The notes beneath the pieces were generated by a model that did no database searches, was not told the DNA's origin, and worked only from the letters and a program-made list of their open reading frames with translations. A stretch of DNA of 63,442 nt, counting the filler, from Dimorphilus gyrociliatus (Eukaryota; Animalia; Annelida), in the NCBI GenBank assembly GCA_904063045.1. It is 6 parts of 6 records of this genome, joined end to end, with 100 filler letters (N's around TTAATTAATTAA, not from the genome) between each part and the next. Parts side by side here need not be neighbours in the genome. Positions count along the whole stretch, not along the records: positions 43,522 to 54,596 come from CAJFCJ010000268.1; 5 more parts are not named here. One strand, written 5' to 3'. Positions 43,522 to 54,596 of this stretch are shown here, piece by piece; the first letter of the stretch is position 1, and each line of letters starts with the position of its first letter. A program made the position numbers and the translations under genes.

Positions 43522-44534
43522 ACTACTTGTGGACGAATTTGAAAGGTTCTATTTGTGTGATACTTTGGTGCATTGATAAATGATTGGAAAGGACGAATAC
43601 TGTTCTGAAGAAGGAGAAATTCCTACAATTACAATACAACAAAGTACAATTTTGTTCAATAATTTATGAAATTGATATCAATCATCCAAGGAGTTACATT
43701 ATAGAGGGGAGTAGGAATCTTGTCAAAATTTTCTTTTTAGCATCTTTTGATAAATATTGAATTCATAATATTCAAAAAACACTATTTGAAAACAGACCTA
43801 ATCCTCAGTCTAGGCCTAGCATACTCTAAAAGTAATCAAAGTGCTAATTTTCCAAAATCACTAGAAATATTGTTCCTACCCCTGCAACGAGTCACATGTG
43901 ATAAGGAGAAGTGGAAAATGAAGAAAACTGAAAGTGAGAAAATGTTTTAAAAAGATATTTTGTGTGCAGTTTTTATTGAATCTAAACAATTTATGCTGTA
44001 TATATAAGAGAGAGGTTGAAATGTGAACAGAGAGTGACAAGCATCTCTCACAAAATAATAAAAACAAACAGAAAAATACTTTTACAATAGATTTAAGTGT
44101 TTTAAAAAGTAAGAAAACTACTTTTTTATACTAACTGCCAAGCTACAACTTTTTCAACAGCTATACATGATTGTTACAATTGTGCTATTGCAATACCATT
44201 AGACTGTAAAATAGAAATGGATATCTAAAGTCCAAGTATTGATAATTCACTATATCTAAGTGCACAAAAATTCTAAAAATATGTTTGTTAAAAGGCTGCG
44301 TTGGTCTTTAAAATGGTGGAAAATGCCAAATTATTAAAAATTCCATTGTTTAGTGGTAATAATTGAATAATGAATTACAGAGCAATCGAACAATTTCTGT
44401 CATTATTGAAAAGTTTTTATACACATTTAAATTGCCTCATGAATTAAATTATTAATTCAAAATGTAAATTAATCAATGAAAACATATCAAAAATCCTTTA
44501 GAATATTGGTTCAGTTATAAACATCACTGGTTGT

Positions 44535-44740
44535 ACTTTGTTGTTTTGAAATTGGAGGAATTTCTGGTTTCTTACAACTGTAAGCATTCTTTCCAATCAT
44601 TTGCCAATTTGCCAAAGTACTCACACAAATAGAACCTTTAGAATTCGTCCACAAATAGTCTTAGCAAATGTAATTTTGGTAGAAATTAATCAGCAAAACA
44701 CAAGTATTTCATTTAAAGAATATGTATTGAGTAAAATGAG
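44535..44740 (-). mobile_element. Phantom PHD-FLYWCH linker repeat (R), minus orientation, abutting the GT stop; second copy 51221-51426
   Basis: gttcgtccacaaatagtctt...gaatatgtattgagtaaa[a]tgag matches 9960-10071 in contig 1. Confidence 0.75.
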
Positions 44741-44755
44741 CAATTACCTACAGTA

Positions 44756-45961
44756 TTACATACATAAAATTTCTTTATATAATGTTTCTACAGCTTTGAT
44801 TGAATGTTCTAATGAGAAACCCTTTACTGCATATTCAGCACAGTAGGCACGTCTAGCTGCTTTATCGCTGTGTTTAAGTTCTTCCATAATGGCATCAGCC
44901 AGTTCTAAATCATCTTCTACTTGAACCAGACGACCTACTTTGCTATCAATAAAATCTGGTAAACCACCTTGGTTAGTACCCACTACAGGTGTGCCACAAG
45001 CAAGGGCTTCAATTGCTACTAGACCAAATGGTTCTGTACGAGAAGGCACAACACTTACATCTGCAATATTGTACATTTTAACTAATGTCTCTTGATTAAC
45101 GTGACCTAAGAAGTATACATGTTCAAGGTCTAAATCTTCTTTCATACGCTTTAACACACCATAGAGTTCACCATTACCTGCAATAATTGTCATTACTTTA
45201 CCACAGGTTGATTTTTCGTAACGTTTTGCTGCTTTTAGCAATACATCCACACCTTTAAAGTGTGTTAATTTTCCTGCAAAAGCTACGATACAATCTGTTT
45301 TGACTGTAACATCAAATTCATTTAAAACAGTTTCTTTACTTAAGTCCAGAGGATGGAATAAGGATTCATCATAACCATTTAATAAAATCATACGTTTATT
45401 GCTCGGCACTTTATACAGTTGTGCTGTTTCAGCATCTACTTGTTTAGAGATGGTAATAATCATCTTAGCATTAGCCACCCCTTCTATAGCAAAACTATGG
45501 TATCTGTCATCTTTTACAAAGCCTTTTAAATCCGTACCATGGGCAGTAATAACATATGGCACACCTGTTAACATAGCAGCATAAGGTGTAATCCATAAAT
45601 GCTGTGCATGGATAATATCTGGTTTAAAAGTATCTACTTCCTCTTGAACCACTTCTATATATTTATCCATGTAAGTCTTCATTTGATCATCTGATAATTC
45701 ATAATAAGTTGTATTACTTCTTGGATGGGTTGTAAAACATGGAAAATTGAAATCCACTTCAGGCTTTACTGTATTTGGTCCCTTAAACTTAATGACTCTT
45801 GATTCAAATCCTTTATATGTCTTGTCTTCGTGTTCTGGATAAATGATTTTAACCTTATGGCCAAAACTTACTAAAGCCTTTGCCAAATTTTTGGTGTACA
45901 CGCCACTACCAGTCCCCTCCAATGGAAAATGATTAACTAACAAAATCTTCACACTCATCAT
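44756..45961 (-). CDS. Bacterial-type GT4 (GT-B fold) glycosyltransferase, BshA/MshA-like superfamily; intact
   Basis: 401 codons, no introns. N-terminal KILLVNHFPLEGTGSGVY, DIIHAQH, ITAHGTDL, FAGKLTHFKGVD, and the retaining-GT E-x7-E motif EPFGLVAIEALACGTPVVGTNQGG. Confidence 0.93.
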   Translation of the reverse strand: MMSVKILLVNHFPLEGTGSGVYTKNLAKALVSFGHKVKIIYPEHEDKTYKGFESRVIKFKGPNTVKPEVDFNFPCFTTHPRSNTTYYELSDDQMKTYMDKYIEVVQEEVDTFKPDIIHAQHLWITPYAAMLTGVPYVITAHGTDLKGFVKDDRYHSFAIEGVANAKMIITISKQVDAETAQLYKVPSNKRMILLNGYDESLFHPLDLSKETVLNEFDVTVKTDCIVAFAGKLTHFKGVDVLLKAAKRYEKSTCGKVMTIIAGNGELYGVLKRMKEDLDLEHVYFLGHVNQETLVKMYNIADVSVVPSRTEPFGLVAIEALACGTPVVGTNQGGLPDFIDSKVGRLVQVEDDLELADAIMEELKHSDKAARRAYCAEYAVKGFSLEHSIKAVETLYKEILCM

Positions 45962-46016
45962 CCCTTACTTGTAATTTATGAGAAATTTCTTGCTATAACA
46001 ATAGAAACTTGTTATA
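45952..46016 (-). promoter_or_regulatory. Shine-Dalgarno-like AAGGGA 8 nt before an in-frame GTG (45952); upstream 8-bp inverted repeat TATAACAA-N7-TTGTTATA (45994-46016)
   Basis: Minus strand reads ...AAGTAAGGGATGATGAGTGTGAAGATT; the palindrome is perfect on inspection. Confidence 0.45.
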
Positions 46017-46350
46017 AAAGTAGTCAGCATAAATATGCTACAAAGTAAATTTTGATAGTCCAAATATTAAAAGTCTTTTTCTTTGCACACATACATTTGT
46101 CAACTATAATCTCACAATAGAGAAGTAGTATTGAGCCAGGATTGTACTATTCAAAAGAGTTTTGTGGCATTGTGTGGTAATTATATAAGATTTGTTAAAG
46201 ATTTTTCAAAAATCATTAAACTAGGATAAAAGTTGTTCCCCTGCTAGCTGACTGTTGCTGAACATTTGTTTCTTTTGCTCCTAACACTGCATAGCCAGAA
46301 TGTTGTCTTTTTTCTTTTTTCTTTTAAAGAAAAAAATATGTGCTACAATA
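46016..46350 (-). mobile_element. Decayed Phantom transposase remnant pointing into the GT start (FLYWCH to DGTF)
   Basis: KTTFWLCSVRSKRNKCSATV (compare TTTIWVCSVRSKKKRCVARI at 47340), LNTTS.L, KRLLIFG, and YAD--TF with a 2-nt deletion. Repeated at ~52700-53030. Confidence 0.6.
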
Positions 46351-46470
46351 TGGAAAAATCTTTTACTGGAGGAGAAACCTGTGTATATCTGTATGATCAG
46401 AATCAGAATCAAGTTTTTTTCTTTCAAATTATTATCATAACTCCATATATCATATATTTTCTTCAGGGTC

Positions 46471-46539
46471 AGGTGCAAACGTACCTGGGTGCGAATGTAC
46501 CCAAGGCAGGTGTGAACATACCCAGGTACATTCCCACCC
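46471..46539. repeat. Cluster of ~16-bp GGTG(C/T)(G/A)AA..TACC motifs (3 direct + 1 inverted); foldback-type MULE terminal repeats; copy at 53155-53223
   Basis: aggtgcaaacgtacct, gggtgcgaatgtaccc, aggtgtgaacataccc, then aggtacattcccaccc (inverted). Sits between two divergent Phantom transposase genes. Confidence 0.65.
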
Positions 46540-46987
46540 TCTTTCCTCTTTCTTTTATTTATTGATTTTTCATCAAATGGTTTTGTTAATAATAGATATA
46601 TATGTATATACTCAGACTGTAAAAAGTAATATTTTATCAATGTGAAGTATTATTTAAAAATATTAAATATTGTTGAAAAGTGAAATGGCAGGAAGTTCAA
46701 TAGTGAAGGTGGTTGAAATAAACTTTCACTTTGGACAGCATATACTTTCAAAGGTAAGCTGTATGTCCTGAATAAATTTGGACAAAGTGCTTCTTTGTAG
46801 ATTTTGAACAGGTAAATATTTAAAGCTTTTTAACTAGATTTTTGATGCAAAATATTACAATTTAATATATTTTCTTTAATAACAAATTATTTCAATATTT
46901 GCTATAAACAAAATTTCAGCCATTTTGAATATTTGGAAAGGACAGTGATTTTTTAATAATCAAGTGAATTTGTTCTGTTGAAACAAC

Positions 46988-48050
46988 ATGGTTTCAAAGT
47001 GCAACAATTGTGATTCAAAAATTTATGGAAGGCAAAAATATTTGAAATGCTGCCTTTGTGAGAATCTTATCCATAGAAAATGTTCAGGTACATCAGTTTT
47101 CAATTATGATTTAGGCAACTATCTTTTCTTAACACATTGACACAGAAACACCTAGCATACCTGTTTGCACAAGATGTAACAAAAGAAAATGTACTGTTAG
47201 CCTTAAGAAGTTAACAAATCTGGAAATTGATCAATACAAAGAAAGTAATAAGGACTTCAATGATAACAGAAGTGATCCTGCTGAGGTTAAAGATTCAACA
47301 TTTGATTATGAAAGTCCTCGGCAATCAGAAAACCAATCAATGGATGTAGAAGGAACTGATGAAAATACAGAAGATGAAAATGACTCAATCAGGAGGAATG
47401 ATTTTGAGATTGTACAAGGAGGAAGCAGAAAAGGACATGACATTTTATTGAATGATGGATATTCTTTTGTTGTTAAACATAAAACACTTACAACAACAAT
47501 TTGGGTATGCAGTGTGAGAAGTAAGAAAAAAAGATGTGTAGCTAGAATAAGACAAAATGGAAGTATATTTATTAAAGGCAATCTGGAACATAATCACAAC
47601 AGAAAACCTAATTTGGAAGTAGATGTTAAAGTAAAAACTGATGTAAAAACTATTTGCAAAAGTGATAACAAAGCATCTGGAAGAAGCATTGCTGAAAAAT
47701 TTCTATTATCATATGAACCTAATGCTAAATGTCTTCCTGATATCAATTACTTAAAAAGGATGGCAAACTCAAACAGACAAAAATTCAGGCCAGTTGAACC
47801 AAAAGTGTATAATTTCAACTTGAACACAACTTTTTTACCTGATGAATTTCTCCAGAAAGACATTTGTGAAAATGGAGAAAGAATCTTAATTTTTGCAACA
47901 AACCATCAGCTGAACTTATTATCCAAATCCAACTACTGGTATATTGATGGTACTTTCCAAATTGTTAAGGATCCATTCTGGTTACTTTTCAATTTTGATG
48001 GCTATTCTACCTTCCAAATCAATGTATTGTGGCTTCATTTGAATTGTTGA
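46988..48050 (+). mobile_element. Spliced PHD-FLYWCH-MULE (Phantom-type) transposase, truncated just after DGTF; exons 46988-47087 and 47146-48050
   Basis: A 58-nt GT-AG intron joins MVSKCNNC...CCLC...IHRKCS to ETPSIPVCTRC (C4HC3) in frame with ORF 47340 (FLYWCH; IFATNHQLNLLSK...WYIDGTFQIVKDPF). Confidence 0.85.
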
Positions 48051-48290
48051 ATTCAATTTTTCAGGTGTATCAAAGTTGTTACATCTGTTCCAATACCATA
48101 TTGTGAACACTCACTGTTTGTTTGTTTTAATTAATTCATTATGGGTGTGTTATTATGGTTGTATTTAAATATACTTTGTGAATAAAATTGTAATTATTTT
48201 ATCATATTATTAGTTGATTCTTTTAGATTTAGATATATAAAACTAGGTCATCATCCATTGATTGGAAGAGTTTTGTCTTAAAAAATACTT

Positions 48291-48485
48291 TTATATATGC
48301 CCCATATTGGCTTCAATAATGTTGAAGTCTGGGCAGTTAGCTGGCCATGAATGCAATGTTTCAACTTTCTTTCTCTTTAGGTATTCCTTTGCTCTGGCTG
48401 CTGTATGACAGCTGGGCCCATCGTGTTGGAAAATTTTCCCTCTATAATAATTGAATGCAAATATAGGCAAAAAGTCCCCAGCCAC
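48291..48485 (-). mobile_element. Tc1/mariner DDE remnant
   Basis: IFQHDGPSCHTA...SWPANCPDFNIIE. Confidence 0.75.
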
Positions 48486-48788
48486 CTTGTAAAATTTTTT
48501 GTTTTGATATTAAGCTATGCTGAATAGCTACTTTGAATTGGTAATAATAATGATTAATATGTATAAACTAATGTCCTTTACGAAAAATGATCAAAAAATT
48601 GTTTTTCTTTTATAAAATCCTGTTTTAGTAAATACATCTCGAAAAAAGGGGTTAGTTAAAAATGAGTCACCATCTATTTAATCAAAAAAAGGGGGTTAAG
48701 CTGCATAAATCAAATAGGAAAGTATTTTATTATAATTATATCTTTGGTTTTTCAAAAAAATAATGGTCATTGATAAAAAATTTGTTAT

Positions 48789-50042
48789 TTGGTTGTTGAA
48801 AAATGCCAAGAAGGGCTATCATTGAACAAAATTACCAAAATGTTTACAATTTCTAGCTTCAGTGCCCAATATATCTGGAAAATGTTTCAATTGCATCATA
48901 CAATTGAAGATTTGAAAGTTGGCCTATCATTAATTTTTAAACAACTACTCATTTCATCAAATTCATTACAAAAGATCAATTTATGTTATTGTGATTTAGG
49001 CAAGAACAACTGTGAAACTCTATCAAATCTGCTTTCAAACTGTTCAAAAATTGAAAAAGTTAATTTAAGTTGGAATCCAAATGTTGAACACTTTTTACCT
49101 AAAATTTGCCAAGCACTTTTAATATCGTCAATTGGACTCAAAGCTATAAACTTTTGCAATTGTAATTTGGATGGGAATAGTATTAAGAATGTTGCAGATT
49201 TATTAAAGAAATGTTGTTCTTTACAAAAAGTTGACTTTTCATTGAATAAAGATTTAAAAGACAGCTTGCCTACTATTTTGGATGGACTCTACAATTGTTG
49301 TAATACTCTAGCAGAAATTTATTTAAAAAGTTGTCTTTTAAATGGAAGTATGGCCAGAGAAATTGGTAATTTTTTAAATAACTGCCATAAAATTGAAAAG
49401 ATCAATTTATCATTTAATGACAATATGGAAAATGGATTTTTTTATATATGTAAACATCTACACAACTCTTCAAATACTCTAAAAGAAAATACAACAATAT
49501 CAGAACAAATATTAAGGAATATTGCTGACACATTAAAATCAGTGAAACAGCTGATAAAGATTGATTTCAAAGGCTGCAATTTAGAAGAGGAACAATGTAG
49601 AAAGATTGGAAAGCTTTTCTAAAGTTGCTCTAAAATAGACACAATCAACTTGGCATGGAATGTTCAGATGGGAGAAGGATTATTTAACATTTGTAAAGGA
49701 CTCATCCAATCGTCAAGCTGTTTAAAAGAGATAAATTTCGGCTGTTGTAATTTAAACAATGGGCAATGTAGACATATTGGAAACCTTTTTAAAGAATGCG
49801 CCAAGCTAGAGACAATCTACCTGACAGGAAATCATACAACAGGCAATGGACTATTCTATATTTGTGCACAACTTCTTCATTTGTCAAATACTTTAAAATG
49901 CCTCAACTTTACAGAATGTAATTTGAGCGAAGACCAGTCTAAAATAATAATTAACTTGTTTAAACACTGTTCAAAACTTAAAAGAATTTCTCTGGAACGG
50001 ATATGGCATTGCGGAAGTGATCTTTTTGAACTAAGCAAATAG
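48789..50042 (+). pseudogene. RNI-like LRR gene remnant, fused in frame at its 5' end to a Tc1-like HTH fragment
   Basis: QEGLSLNKITKMFTISSFSAQYIWKMF...TIEDL, then LRR units of the contig 1 family (NDNMENGFFYICKHLHNSSNTLK); frameshift near 49620. Confidence 0.7.
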
Positions 50043-50115
50043 GTTGTTTAATTACACTGCTCTTAAATATTTTAATTATTCTTCTAATATTCCTGGTGAT
50101 TGTTTAAAATAGTTT

Positions 50116-50340
50116 AGAACTAGAAACTCATTTACTCAATAGATATTCTTTAAACAAAATACTGGCATTTTGTTGATTAATTTCTACTGAAATTACATTT
50201 CTTAAGACTACTTGTGGACGAATTTGAAAGGTTCTATTTGTGTGAGTACTTTGGTGCATTGATAAATGATTGGAAAGGACGAATACTGTTCTGAAGAAGG
50301 AGAAATTCCTACAATTACAATACAACAAAGTACAATTTTG
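50116..50340 (+). mobile_element. Phantom linker repeat (R), plus orientation; partial copy 43522-43655
   Basis: aactagaaactcatttactcaata...cttgtggacgaatttgaaaggttct...acaattacaatacaacaaa is the reverse complement of 9860-10080. Confidence 0.8.
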
Positions 50341-51441
50341 TTCAATAATTTATGAAATTGATATCAATCATCCAAGGAGTTACATTATAGAGGGGAGTAG
50401 GAATCTTGTCAAAATTTTCTTTTTAGCATCTTTTGATAAATATTGAATTCATAATATTCAAAAAACACTATTTGAAAACAGACCTAATCCTCAGTCTAGG
50501 CCTAGCATACTCTAAAAGTAATCAAAGTGCTAATTTTCCAAAATCACTAGAAATATTGTTCCTACCCCTGCAACGAGTCACATGTGATAAGGAGAAGTGG
50601 AAAATGAAGAAAACTGAAAGTGAGAAAATGTTTTAAAAAGATATTTTGTGTGCAGTTTTTATTGAATCTAAACAATTTATGCTGTATATATAAGAGAGAG
50701 GTTGAAATGTGAACAGAGAGTGACAAGCATCTCTCACAAAATAATAAAAACAAACAGAAAAATACTTTTACAATAGATTTAAGTGTTTTAAAAAGTAAGA
50801 AAACTACTTTTTTATACTAACTGCCAAGCTACAACTTTTTCAACAGCTATACATGATTGTTACAATTGTGCTATTGCAATACCATTAGACTGTAAAATAG
50901 AAATGGATATCTAAAGTCCAAGTATTGATAATTCACTATATCTAAGTGCACAAAAATTCTAAAAATATGTTTGTTAAAAGGCTGCGTTGGTCTTTAAAAT
51001 GGTGGAAAATGCCAAATTATTAAAAATTCCATTGTTTAGTGGTAATAATTGAATAATGAATTACAGAGCAATCGAACAATTTCTGTCATTATTGAAAAGT
51101 TTTTATACACATTTAAATTGCCTCATGAATTAAATTATTAATTCAAAATGTAAATTAATCAATGAAAACATATCAAAAATCCTTTAGAATATTGGTTCAG
51201 TTATAAACATCACTGGTTGTACTTTGTTGTTTTGAAATTGGAGGAATTTCTGGTTTCTTACAACTGTAAGCATTCTTTCCAATCATTTGCCAATTTGCCA
51301 AAGTACTCACACAAATAGAACCTTTAGAATTCGTCCACAAATAGTCTTAGCAAATGTAATTTTGGTAGAAATTAATCAGCAAAACACAAGTATTTCATTT
51401 AAAGAATATGTATTGAGTAAAATGAGCAATTACCTACAGTA

Positions 51442-52646
51442 TTACATACATAAAATTTCTTTATATAATGTTTCTACAGCTTTGATTGAATGTTCTAATG
51501 AGAAACCCTTTACTGCATATTCAGCACAGTAGGCACGTCTAGCTGCTTTATCGCTGTGTTTAAGTTCTTCCATAATGGCATCAGCCAGTTCTAAATCATC
51601 TTCTACTTGAACCAGACGACCTACTTTGCTATCAATAAAATCTGGTAAACCACCTTGGTTAGTACCCACTACAGGTGTGCCACAAGCAAGGGCTTCAATT
51701 GCTACTAGACCAAATGGTTCTGTACGAGAAGGCACAACACTTACATCTGCAATATTGTACATTTTAACTAATGTCTCTTGATTAACGTGACCTAAGAAGT
51801 ATACATGTTCAAGGTCTAAATCTTCTTTCATACGCTTTAACACACCATAGAGTTCACCATTACCTGCAATAATTGTCATTACTTTACCACAGGTTGATTT
51901 TTCGTAACGTTTTGCTGCTTTTAGCAATACATCCACACCTTTAAAGTGTGTTAATTTTCCTGCAAAAGCTACGATACAATCTGTTTTGACTGTAACATCA
52001 AATTCATTTAAAACAGTTTCTTTACTTAAGTCCAGAGGATGGAATAAGGATTCATCATAACCATTTAATAAAATCATACGTTTATTGCTCGGCACTTTAT
52101 ACAGTTGTGCTGTTTCAGCATCTACTTGTTTAGAGATGGTAATAATCATCTTAGCATTAGCCACCCCTTCTATAGCAAAACTATGGTATCTGTCATCTTT
52201 TACAAAGCCTTTTAAATCCGTACCATGGGCAGTAATAACATATGGCACACCTGTTAACATAGCAGCATAAGGTGTAATCCATAAATGCTGTGCATGGATA
52301 ATATCTGGTTTAAAAGTATCTACTTCCTCTTGAACCACTTCTATATATTTATCCATGTAAGTCTTCATTTGATCATCTGATAATTCATAATAAGTTGTAT
52401 TACTTCTTGGATGGGTTGTAAAACATGGAAAATTGAAATCCACTTCAGGCTTTACTGTATTTGGTCCCTTAAACTTAATGACTCTTGATTCAAATCCTTT
52501 ATATGTCTTGTCTTCGTGTTCTGGATAAATGATTTTAACCTTATGGCCAAAACTTACTAAAGCCTTTGCCAAATTTTTGGTGTACACGCCACTACCAGTC
52601 CCTCCAATGGAAAATGATTAACTAACAAAATCTTCACACTCATCAT
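51442..52646 (-). pseudogene. Second copy of the GT4 gene with a 1-bp deletion in a C4 run at ~52600 (possibly a consensus error)
   Basis: The translated part matches copy 1; agtcccctcc (45911) versus agtccctcc (52597). Confidence 0.85.
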
Positions 52647-53671
52647 CCCTTACTTGTAATTTATGAGAAATTTCTTGCTATAACAATAGAAACTTGTTAT
52701 AAAGTAGTCAGCATAAATTTTGGTACAAAGAAAATTTTGATAGTCCAAATATTACAAGTCTTTTTCTTTGCACACATACATTTGTCAACTATAATCTCAC
52801 AATAGAGAAGTAGTATTGAGCCAGGATTGTACTATTCAAAAGAGTTTTGTGGCATTGTGTGGTAATTATATAAGATTGTTAAAGATTTTTCAAAAATCAT
52901 TAAACTAGGATAAAAGTTGTTCCCCTGCTAGCTGACTGTTGCTGAACATTTGTTTCTTTTGCTCCTAACACTGCATAGCCAGAATGTTGTCTTTTTTCTT
53001 TTTTCTTTTAAAGAAAAAATATGTGCTACAATATGGAAAAATCTTTTACTGGAGGAGAAACCTGTGTATATCTGTATGATCAGAATCAGAATCAAGTTTT
53101 TTTTCTTTCAAATTATTATCATAACTCCATATATCATATATTTTCTTCAGGGTCAGGTGCAAACGTACCTGGGTGCGAATGTACCCAAGGCAGGTGTGAA
53201 CATACCCAGGTACATTCCCACCCTCTTTCCTCTTTCTTTTATTTATTGATTTTTCATCAAATGGTTTTGTTAATAATAGATATATATGTATATACTCAGA
53301 CTGTAAAAAGTAATATTTTATCAATGTGAAGTATTATTTAAAAATATTAAATATTGTTGAAAAGTGAAATGGCAGGAAGTTCAATAGTGAAGGTGGTTGA
53401 AATAAACTTTCACTTTGGACAGCATATACTTTCAAAGGTAAGCTGTATGTCCTGAATAAATTTGGACAAAGTGCTTCTTTGTAGATTTTGAACAGGTAAA
53501 TATTTAAAGCTTTTTAACTAGATTTTTGATGCAAAATATTACAATTTAATATATTTTCTTTAATAACAAATTATTTCAATATTTGCTATAAACAAAATTT
53601 CAGCCATTTTGAATATTTGGAAAGGACAGTGATTTTTTAATAATCAAGTGAATTTGTTCTGTTGAAACAAC

Positions 53672-54596
53672 ATGGTTTCAAAGTGGCAACAATTGTGATT
53701 CAAAATTTATGGAAGGCAAAAATATTTGAAATGCTGCCTTTGTGAGAATCTTATCCATAGAAAATGTTCAGGTACATCAGTTTTCAAATATGATTTAGGC
53801 AACTATCTTTTCTTAACACATTGACACAGAAACACCTAGCATACCTGTTTGCACAAGATGTAACAAAAGAAAATGTACTGTTAGCCTTAAGAAGTTAACA
53901 AATCTGGAAATTGATCAATACAAAGAAAGTAATAAGGACTTCAATGATAACAGAAGTGATCCTGCTGAGGTTAAAGATTCAACATTTGATTATGAAAGTC
54001 CTCGGCAATCAGAAAACCAATCAATGGATGTAGAAGGAACTGATGAAAATACAGAAGATGAAAATGACTCAATCAGGAGAATGATTTTGAGATTGTACAA
54101 GGAGGAAGCAGAAAAGGACATGACATTTTATTGAATGATGGATATTCTTTTGTTGTTAAACATAAAACACTTACAACAACAATTTGGGTATGCAGTGTGA
54201 GAAGTAAGAAAAAAAGATGTGTAGCTAGAATAAGACAAAATGGAAGTATATTTATTAAAGGCAATCTGGAACATAATCACAACAGAAAACCTAATTTGGA
54301 AGTAGATGTTAAAGTAAAAACTGATGAAAAACTATTTGCAAAATGATAACAAAGCATCTGGAAGAAGCATTGCTGAAAAATTTCTATTATCATATGAACC
54401 TAATGCTAAATGTCTTCCTGATATCAATTACTTAAAAAGGAGCAAACTCAAACAGACAAAAATTCAGGCCAGTTGAACCAAAAGTGTATAATTTCAACTT
54501 GAACACAACTTTTTTACCTGATGAATTTCTCCAGAAAGACATTTGTGAAAATGGAGAAAGAATCTTAATTTTTGCAACAAACCATCAGCTGAACTT
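53672..54596 (+). mobile_element. Second copy of the PHD-FLYWCH-MULE gene, with several small indels, cut by the contig end
   Basis: Aligns to 46988-47910. Confidence 0.85.

Follow-up and report, generated by a model that had tools for sequence, protein, structure and literature searches.

Transfer of bacterial genes into animals is already known as a kind of event, and most claimed cases are either ancient, with donor and mechanism lost, or contamination. Here we consider a gene for a glycosyltransferase of family GT4 (GT in the following) that lies among annelid repeats in the genome assembly of Dimorphilus gyrociliatus (GCA_904063045.1). The window is the whole stretch of DNA that was analysed, 63,442 nucleotides (nt) with filler, in which six parts of this assembly are joined end to end; positions count along it, and the gene lies in part 43522-54596, which comes from CAJFCJ010000268.1.

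The closest described relatives are GT4 proteins of Clostridia (MBN2897988.1; JGI contig Ga0400167_137553), which share family, length and motifs with the worm protein at 81-92% amino acid (aa) identity, and 87% nucleotide identity to the nearest. There the gene is always the second of an operon and starts with GTG, whereas the worm copy stands alone in annelid repeats, starts with ATG and has an approximately fivefold higher ratio of amino-acid to synonymous changes (N/S). Among eukaryotes, the sucrose-phosphate synthase (SPS)-like protein of trypanosomatids (LmjF.16.0950; PDB 9dcm, 8vrf, 8uag) is likewise a GT4 thought to be derived from bacteria, and the Leishmania protein has been described as a lateral acquisition. 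It is a distant and old relative that exceeds the worm protein by about 60 residues, is conserved across Leishmania and has a predicted high expression, whereas the worm gene appears to be young. Bacterial sugar-transferase genes are also found in animals, namely the UDP-glycosyltransferases (UGTs) of spider mites and other transfers in a metazoan compendium of horizontal gene transfer (HGT). The mite enzymes, however, are UGTs of family GT1, long established, intron-bearing, expanded and functionally tested, whereas the worm GT belongs to GT4, has no intron and is 87% identical to living bacteria in nucleotides. Neither Dimorphilus nor Dinophilus is mentioned in the main text of this 2026 compendium. 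Pack-MULEs, captures by Mutator-like elements (MULEs), likewise place foreign coding sequence beside Mutator-like sequence; the worm case involves a whole bacterial gene instead of host fragments, is not located between terminal inverted repeats (TIRs) and lacks a target-site duplication (TSD). Finally, Wolbachia-derived inserts in arthropods and nematodes are young, intronless, often non-functional and located in repeat-rich regions. The worm segment would share with them the nature of young, intronless bacterial DNA, but its donor is a free-living type of anaerobic Clostridia and not a germline endosymbiont, and a single gene is involved and not a large tract.

We put at roughly 0.6 the probability that the GT segment is a genuine, young insertion of bacterial DNA in a dinophilid annelid (D. 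gyrociliatus or a very close relative), which is intact mainly through its youth, under relaxed constraint, and is not proven to be domesticated. As judged from sequence, transfer is supported at the level of the assembly, of the phylogeny and of the substitution pattern.

Results

A sharply bounded bacterial segment carries one intact gene

The bacterial-derived segment spans 1,276 bp and consists of the GT gene, 55 nt upstream and 15 nt downstream (Table 1). It aligns to the bacterial loci L001 and L002 without gaps, at 87% nucleotide identity and with sharp edges: at the 5' junction (46016) identity climbs from background to about 90% over a few bases, and at the 3' side homology ends about 15 nt past the stop codon. 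Microhomology was sought at the segment junctions and none was found there. A first-pass annotation of the window had placed the edges 15 nt 3' of the stop and 55 nt 5' of the ATG, in exact agreement with the blastn boundaries, and had rightly described the foreign segment as little more than a ribosome-binding site and a coding sequence. It had also seen no other bacterial gene nearby, and a tblastn search of the part with the seven neighbouring genes of the L001 locus indeed recovers only the 3' end of the upstream operon gene, 27 codons that overlap the GT start (residues 385-411, 85% identity, E 5e-9). Hits to four D. gyrociliatus loci, which match the flanks, include just 1 base of the segment.

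The open reading frame (ORF) of 401 codons is intronless and intact on the minus strand, and bears the GT4 hallmarks as first reported. Both Pfam domains score above their gathering thresholds, Glycos_transf_1 with E 2e-36 and 125 bits (cut-off 26) and Glyco_transf_4 with E 5e-19 and 69 bits (cut-off 28.5), and the motifs EGTGSG, HGTD, GKLTHFKG and EPFGLVAIE (EX7E) are found at residues 15, 141, 230 and 310, respectively. The encoded protein is thus predicted to be a complete retaining enzyme of the GT-B fold (GT4). The initial assignment to BshA/MshA-like enzymes has to be given up, since the scores fall far short of both NCBIfam equivalog cut-offs: GT reaches 106.9 bits against BshA (TIGR03999; cut-off 273.7) and 115.9 bits against MshA (TIGR03449; cut-off 462.5), the latter over residues 88-399 only. 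Of the proteins with solved structures, the trypanosomatid 'sucrose-phosphate synthase-like protein' comes closest (E 3e-33), matched chiefly in the C-terminal nucleotide-sugar domain; a literature search on the solved structures of this name found no paper. Exact sequence look-ups of GT, with three alternative starts, and of the neighbouring FLYWCH ORF found no identical record.

The start region differs from that of bacterial relatives. Five bacterial sisters read GTG ACG AGT ahead of their annotated GTG start, and the worm copy reads ATG ATG AGT, so that its two N-terminal ATG codons lie upstream of the bacterial start. The first ATG is unique among 10 sequences, and the second is also present in two of the four outgroups compared; without these two codons, the next methionine would be residue 94. 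On the 5' side, several ATGs precede the gene, terminated by an in-frame TAA that lies 6 nt ahead of the start, and a single TATA-like hexamer occurs at 46187, which carries no weight on its own. Neither AATAAA nor ATTAAA occurs in the 350 nt 3' of the stop.

GT nests within a Clostridia family and comes from a conserved operon

A search of a protein collection of 5.8 billion clusters places the nearest relatives of GT at 92% amino acid identity, followed by a group at 81-83% that includes a Clostridia metagenome-assembled genome, and by many further relatives at 60-67%, including Helicovermis profundi and Acidaminobacter. No cluster member is closer to the worm protein than 92%. The relatives at 92% are encoded on two bacterial contigs (379 kb and 28 kb), beside dapB, tyrS, a two-component system and PFOR, and further members of their cluster share this genomic setting. 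Relatives with a source name, and those inspected at locus level, are bacterial. In a maximum likelihood tree of 37 proteins, the worm GT forms a clade of four with P0001-P0003 (100% SH-aLRT), of which P0001 and P0002 have been confirmed to lie on bacterial contigs, and this clade is nested in a 12-member clade (99%) within a Clostridia family. GT hence nests among bacteria and not in a vertically inherited eukaryotic clade, which bears out the bacterial origin first proposed for it. Its end branch measures 0.10, compared with at most 0.007 for its sisters.

In every bacterial relative inspected at locus level (59-92% identity), the gene order is unk411-GT-cNMP581-GalU, with GalU (289 aa) seen 3' of the 581-aa gene wherever the contig extends that far. 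The 289-aa protein is identified as GalU at 393 bits (cut-off 327). The 411-aa and 581-aa partners resemble GT-A-fold transferases, as atlas leads only; the 581-aa protein has a cyclic-nucleotide (cNMP)-binding domain at its C-terminus and the 411-aa protein is without a Pfam family. This context points to an uncharacterised GT4 subfamily of the UDP-glucose type, other than BshA and MshA: because GalU is a conserved operon neighbour, UDP-glucose is the most likely donor sugar, and GT is probably a UDP-glucose-dependent glucosyltransferase. Because the two partner transferases, with which it would act in the donor, were left behind, its native acceptor is probably missing in the worm. The four-gene operon itself, located at L001:8785-13855 and also present in L004, L005, L007, L008, L009, L012 and L018, is uncharacterised and belongs to Acidaminobacteraceae-like Clostridia; it may encode a cyclic-nucleotide-regulated glucoside or glycan pathway.

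Amino-acid changes are in excess on the worm lineage

Relative to its sisters, the worm GT shows dN 0.041, dS 0.74 and dN/dS 0.055, values which suggest that the true donor is unsampled and that most of the divergence accumulated under constraint of the bacterial type. When changes are polarised with four outgroups, synonymous changes are balanced (34 on the worm branch, 30 on the sister stem), whereas the worm branch carries 23 amino-acid changes and the sister stem 2 (p 2e-5). If the five sisters are required to agree, the counts of amino-acid to synonymous changes are 11 : 19 on the worm branch, 1 : 12 on the sister stem and 14 : 124 in the sister clade (p 8e-4). The N/S of the worm lineage, about 0.4-0.6 as counted and roughly 0.13-0.18 per site, is thus raised about fivefold over the bacterial value and still lies below the neutral expectation. 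The gene had been called pristine at first, which does not quite apply: the ORF is intact in copy A of the repeat unit described below, but its lineage bears a surplus of amino-acid changes. Owing to this surplus, GT is unlikely to be a gene in the conserved operon of a living bacterium. A simple mixture estimate puts neutral divergence since departure from the bacterium at roughly 1-2%. The recent date that had been proposed for the transfer is supported. A bias from G:C to A:T on the worm branch had been expected and was dropped as a candidate signature, as the polarised counts show none.

The segment lies in annelid repeats

The part contains 0 N at about 31% G+C, and its flanks are annelid, as phmmer, blastn and tblastn agree and as the first-pass annotation had held. 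Four D. gyrociliatus loci match them at 75-91% nucleotide identity (29-32% G+C in the two loci measured). At 75-91%, and not about 100%, these matches are presumably members of repeat families rather than the same locus; neither a GT copy nor a near-identical copy of the flanks is found in the four loci.

Host linkage is evident at the level of the assembled contig: one junction directly adjoins an annelid repeat, R, and 66 bp from the other further annelid repeats begin. R, which had already been noted at the 3' junction, is confirmed there by the alignment of its inverted-repeat arms and by blastn to D. gyrociliatus. It matches two places in locus L016 at 80-88% identity and runs at least 30 bp further there; because R, longer elsewhere, stops exactly at 44741, the bacterial DNA appears to interrupt a host repeat.

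The flanks had been described as a FLYWCH remnant, a two-block PHD-like/FLYWCH/MULE copy (46988-48005) and a host leucine-rich-repeat (LRR) sequence, and these descriptions are right. An exhaustive phmmer search with the FLYWCH ORF (47340-48050) yields two proteins at 82% identity (CAD5126279.1 and CAD5126542.1, which both carry FLYWCH and MULE) and two at 42-43%, all four from the D. gyrociliatus assembly; word-based homologue searches with the LRR and FLYWCH ORFs gave no match. The MULE copy near GT (FLYWCH Pfam E 5e-7) ends at residue 324 of an 833-aa transposase, which tblastn recovers in two blocks, and its DNA is 78% identical to D. gyrociliatus over 1,377 bp. The element family to which it belongs combines FLYWCH, a MULE DDE transposase and TIRs, as a Phantom-type MULE does. 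Marquez and Pritham are said to have named FLYWCH, in 2010, as a defining trait of Phantom elements.

Duplication in the assembly and presence in sequencing runs

The part consists of 1.66 units of a direct repeat of 6,685 bp, which had escaped the first-pass annotation together with the second GT copy. Between the two copies there are about a dozen 1-bp indels, a substitution cluster at 46033-46070 and one more substitution at 47104. Both junctions of the bacterial segment recur identically, and the copies share every GT substitution. In copy B a 1-bp deletion at about 52599, which turns a CCCC run into three C, shifts the frame near the 5' end of GT and leaves an ORF from a GTG at 52587. The cluster, just outside the 5' junction, comprises 4 substitutions and 1 indel in 38 bp (46033-46070 compared with 52718-52755) and could be a true difference between the copies or a polishing artefact; over the remaining 4.3 kb, almost only 1-bp indels differ. 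For the assembly, the genome paper names PacBio RS II data, processed with PBcR, Quiver and Pilon following four rounds of BlobTools; this chemistry would fit differences of the indel type. The same paper names Mariner and MULE as the DNA transposons of D. gyrociliatus and makes no mention of a glycosyltransferase or of horizontal transfer.

Presence in sequencing runs was scored as the fraction of sampled 31-mers of 44300-46500. Four samples of one study hold 0.88-1.00 of them. In a run of a second study, under another organism label, the fraction is 1.00 for the GT words and 0.81 for GT with its flanks, compared with 0.58 if only GT were present. In a 2024 run under the same species label, the fraction is 0.02. 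The 2.2-kb stretch is represented at 0.89-1.00 in two runs (X1 and X3) that are listed at only 1 million letters each; should this listing give the data size, the 6.7-kb unit would be very abundant, as a multi-copy array or an extrachromosomal form, which we treat as a lead only.

Table 1. Features of part 43522-54596, in window coordinates
Feature	Position	Strand	Basis
Repeat unit, copy A	43561-47917	.	self-alignment; 99.6% identity to copy B
Repeat unit, copy B	50247-54596	.	self-alignment; 99.6% identity to copy A
Bacterial-derived segment, copy A (GT4 gene, 55 nt upstream, 15 nt downstream; 1,276 bp)	44741-46016	-	blastn to bacterial loci L001/L002
Intact GT4 ORF, 401 codons, intronless	44756-45961	-	ORF list, Pfam, motif and start-codon comparison
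Last 27 codons of upstream operon gene (GT-A-like, 411 aa in donor), overlapping GT start	45936-46016	-	tblastn with L001 upstream protein
Bacterial-derived segment, copy B (junctions as in copy A; 0 substitutions relative to copy A)	51427-52701	-	blastn and copy alignment
Annelid repeat R, right arm of 205-bp inverted repeat, ending exactly at 3' junction of bacterial segment	44531-44741	.	arm alignment and blastn
Other arms of repeat R	43522-43665, 50097-50351, 51217-51427		inverted-repeat search
Mosaic of short annelid repeat fragments beside 5' junction	46082-46299	.	blastn, 87-90% to L016, L017, L021
Decayed FLYWCH remnant, pointing at GT	46297-46223	-	tblastn, 80% aa identity to P0130, E 2e-8
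Truncated Phantom-type MULE	46460-48005	+	Pfam, phmmer, tblastn, blastn
Parts of this MULE: left TIR; PHD-like block; 49-bp intron-like gap; FLYWCH-to-DGTF block	~46466-46610 (TIR); 46988-47092 (PHD-like); 47142-48005 (FLYWCH-to-DGTF)		
Tc1/mariner-type transposase fragment	48291-48485	-	Pfam DDE_3, E 2.4e-4, below curated cut-off
NLR-type LRR coding remnant, two same-frame ORFs with one stop between	48789-50042	+	ORFs and tblastn

Other annelid elements

The two LRR ORFs match the LRR array of the D. gyrociliatus NACHT-LRR model P0126 (tblastn, E down to 6e-46). They are 277 and 130 aa long and separated by a single stop at 49620-49622, so that this stretch of about 1.25 kb is nearly open and less decayed than first implied. 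Elsewhere in the genome, a 2.75-kb FLYWCH-MULE is present at L017:9378-12127 and L016:12366-15119; these copies, which share 99.5% identity and carry TIRs of about 129 bp (93% complementary), point to recent or ongoing transposition in a transposon-poor genome. At L016:10001-19028, the annotated gene CAD5126542.1 (2,396 aa) combines NACHT, a long LRR array, FLYWCH and MULE, and looks like a chimeric annotation in which an NLR-type gene model has been merged with an inserted MULE.

Discussion

How might a single clostridial gene have come to lie among annelid repeats? We envision a scenario whereby a fragment of 1.28 kb left the chromosome of an uncultured member of the Clostridia related to Acidaminobacter and Helicovermis, carrying with it the middle gene of an operon for three glycosyltransferases and GalU. 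This fragment would have entered a copy of host repeat R, most likely when a break was repaired by end joining, at a site that represents a graveyard of transposons with fragments of MULE, mariner and NLR-LRR sequences. The block of 6.7 kb around the insert would then have been duplicated in tandem at least once. Since the partner transferases were lost and N/S is about fivefold that of the bacterial sisters, the gene is best understood as a young insert under relaxed constraint. A function of GT in its host accordingly seems less likely to us than a young insert that drifts.

Several observations weigh against this scenario or against parts of it. The stretch is nearly absent from the 2024 run, whose library type would be needed to interpret this, and the identity of the flanks to D. 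gyrociliatus loci falls short of what the same locus would give. Because the copies differ mostly by 1-bp indels, the duplication could be partly an effect of the assembly, or the unit could be circular or multi-copy. That GT is without function in the worm is further called into question by its low overall dN/dS, by the retention of 158 of the 160 columns that are conserved at 95% or more in 118 homologues, and by the worm-specific change from GTG to ATG, which provides a start usable in eukaryotes and would suit eukaryotic translation, although it is only suggestive. Conceivably, then, the transfer is real and the gene is expressed and kept by selection, endowing the worm with a new glucosyl-transfer activity on a glycan, a lipid or a small molecule, whose dose tandem amplification may have raised. 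The intact ORF of copy A with all its hallmark motifs, the two in-frame ATG codons where the sisters read GTG ACG, and an N/S that is raised yet well under neutral would be expected of such a gene. A run from an RNA-kind search (library type not established) contains the complete set of GT words together with some of the flanks, and the nearest solved relative, the Leishmania SPS-like protein, is itself described as laterally acquired and retained, with high expression predicted. We nevertheless consider selection for a host function, which had been suggested at the outset, unlikely, because both partner transferases, which every inspected donor relative has on either side of the gene, are missing, and with them probably the native acceptor, because the gene is located in a transposon graveyard without an intron, without a canonical polyadenylation hexamer and behind several upstream ATGs, and because copy B is frameshifted; as to the low overall dN/dS, divergence within an unsampled bacterial donor lineage can account for it. 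A more elaborate version, in which a freshly acquired clostridial glucosyltransferase has been domesticated by gain of AUG start codons, transcription from neighbouring transposon sequence and amplification in a multi-copy tandem array of 6.7-kb units, appears to us quite unlikely.

Alternatively, the segment may come from a bacterium associated with the cultures, with its attachment to worm repeats due to chimeric reads or to a misassembly, or else the contig may not derive from worm chromosomes at all. The contig is short (11 kb), and it stems from an error-prone assembly of PacBio continuous long reads (CLR) from whole worms in non-axenic cultures; the 2024 run, which holds almost none of the stretch, would also be accounted for. 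A chimera, however, would not cut out exactly one gene and join both of its ends to worm repeats twice, with identical junctions, and the amino-acid excess is unlike a gene in the conserved operon of a living bacterium. Missed adapters in PacBio sequencing lead to inverted duplications, not direct ones. The k-mers, flank words included, moreover recur in several samples and in a second study, and the source assembly had passed through its rounds of BlobTools filtering, so that an artefact is improbable. More improbable still is a capture by a Phantom MULE, which had been proposed at the outset: the element would have taken up GT as cargo in the manner of a Pack-MULE, and its transposition or replication would have made the copies. 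MULE fragments do lie 5' of GT, namely a FLYWCH remnant that shares its orientation at about 210 bp and the truncated MULE at about 445 bp, and the recent activity of the family in D. gyrociliatus, attested by its two nearly identical copies, would have provided the means. Yet about 445 bp separate GT from the left TIR of the adjacent MULE, so that the gene falls outside the element, and the unit contains no second MULE TIR, on the other side of GT or elsewhere; a TSD is lacking under either reading of the inverted repeat, whose arms are repeat R and not a MULE TIR. Furthermore, the other three annelid loci lack R, even where L017 has a full MULE copy, both copies of R in L016 lie outside the MULE there and in direct orientation, and the GT copies form a tandem segmental repeat instead of dispersed insertions. 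The cargo between TIRs and the TSD by which a Pack-MULE is recognised are thus both wanting.

A young insertion by repair, which we prefer to these alternatives, would stand out among bacteria-to-animal transfers in that it is young, has breakpoints known to the base and concerns a tractable host. As the donor lineage is recognisable at 87% nucleotide identity, its operon is known, the breakpoints are exact to the base and the recipient repeat is defined, the event could be studied almost as it happened. Accessible to such study would be the route by which bacterial DNA reaches an animal germline, the way it is joined, and the first phase of its residence with relaxed constraint, gain of AUG codons and segmental duplication. 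The probable host is an annelid cultured in the laboratory, with a genome of 74 Mb. A practical corollary is that decontamination by whole contigs does not remove such inserts, which annotation can also overlook. Should the gene prove to be domesticated, it would be among the youngest functional bacteria-to-animal transfers known, in a very compact and conservative animal genome, and to our knowledge the first in an annelid. If GT is used by the worm, it would represent a new sugar-transfer activity for an animal, and if it is not, it would provide a clean example of the raw material for innovation.

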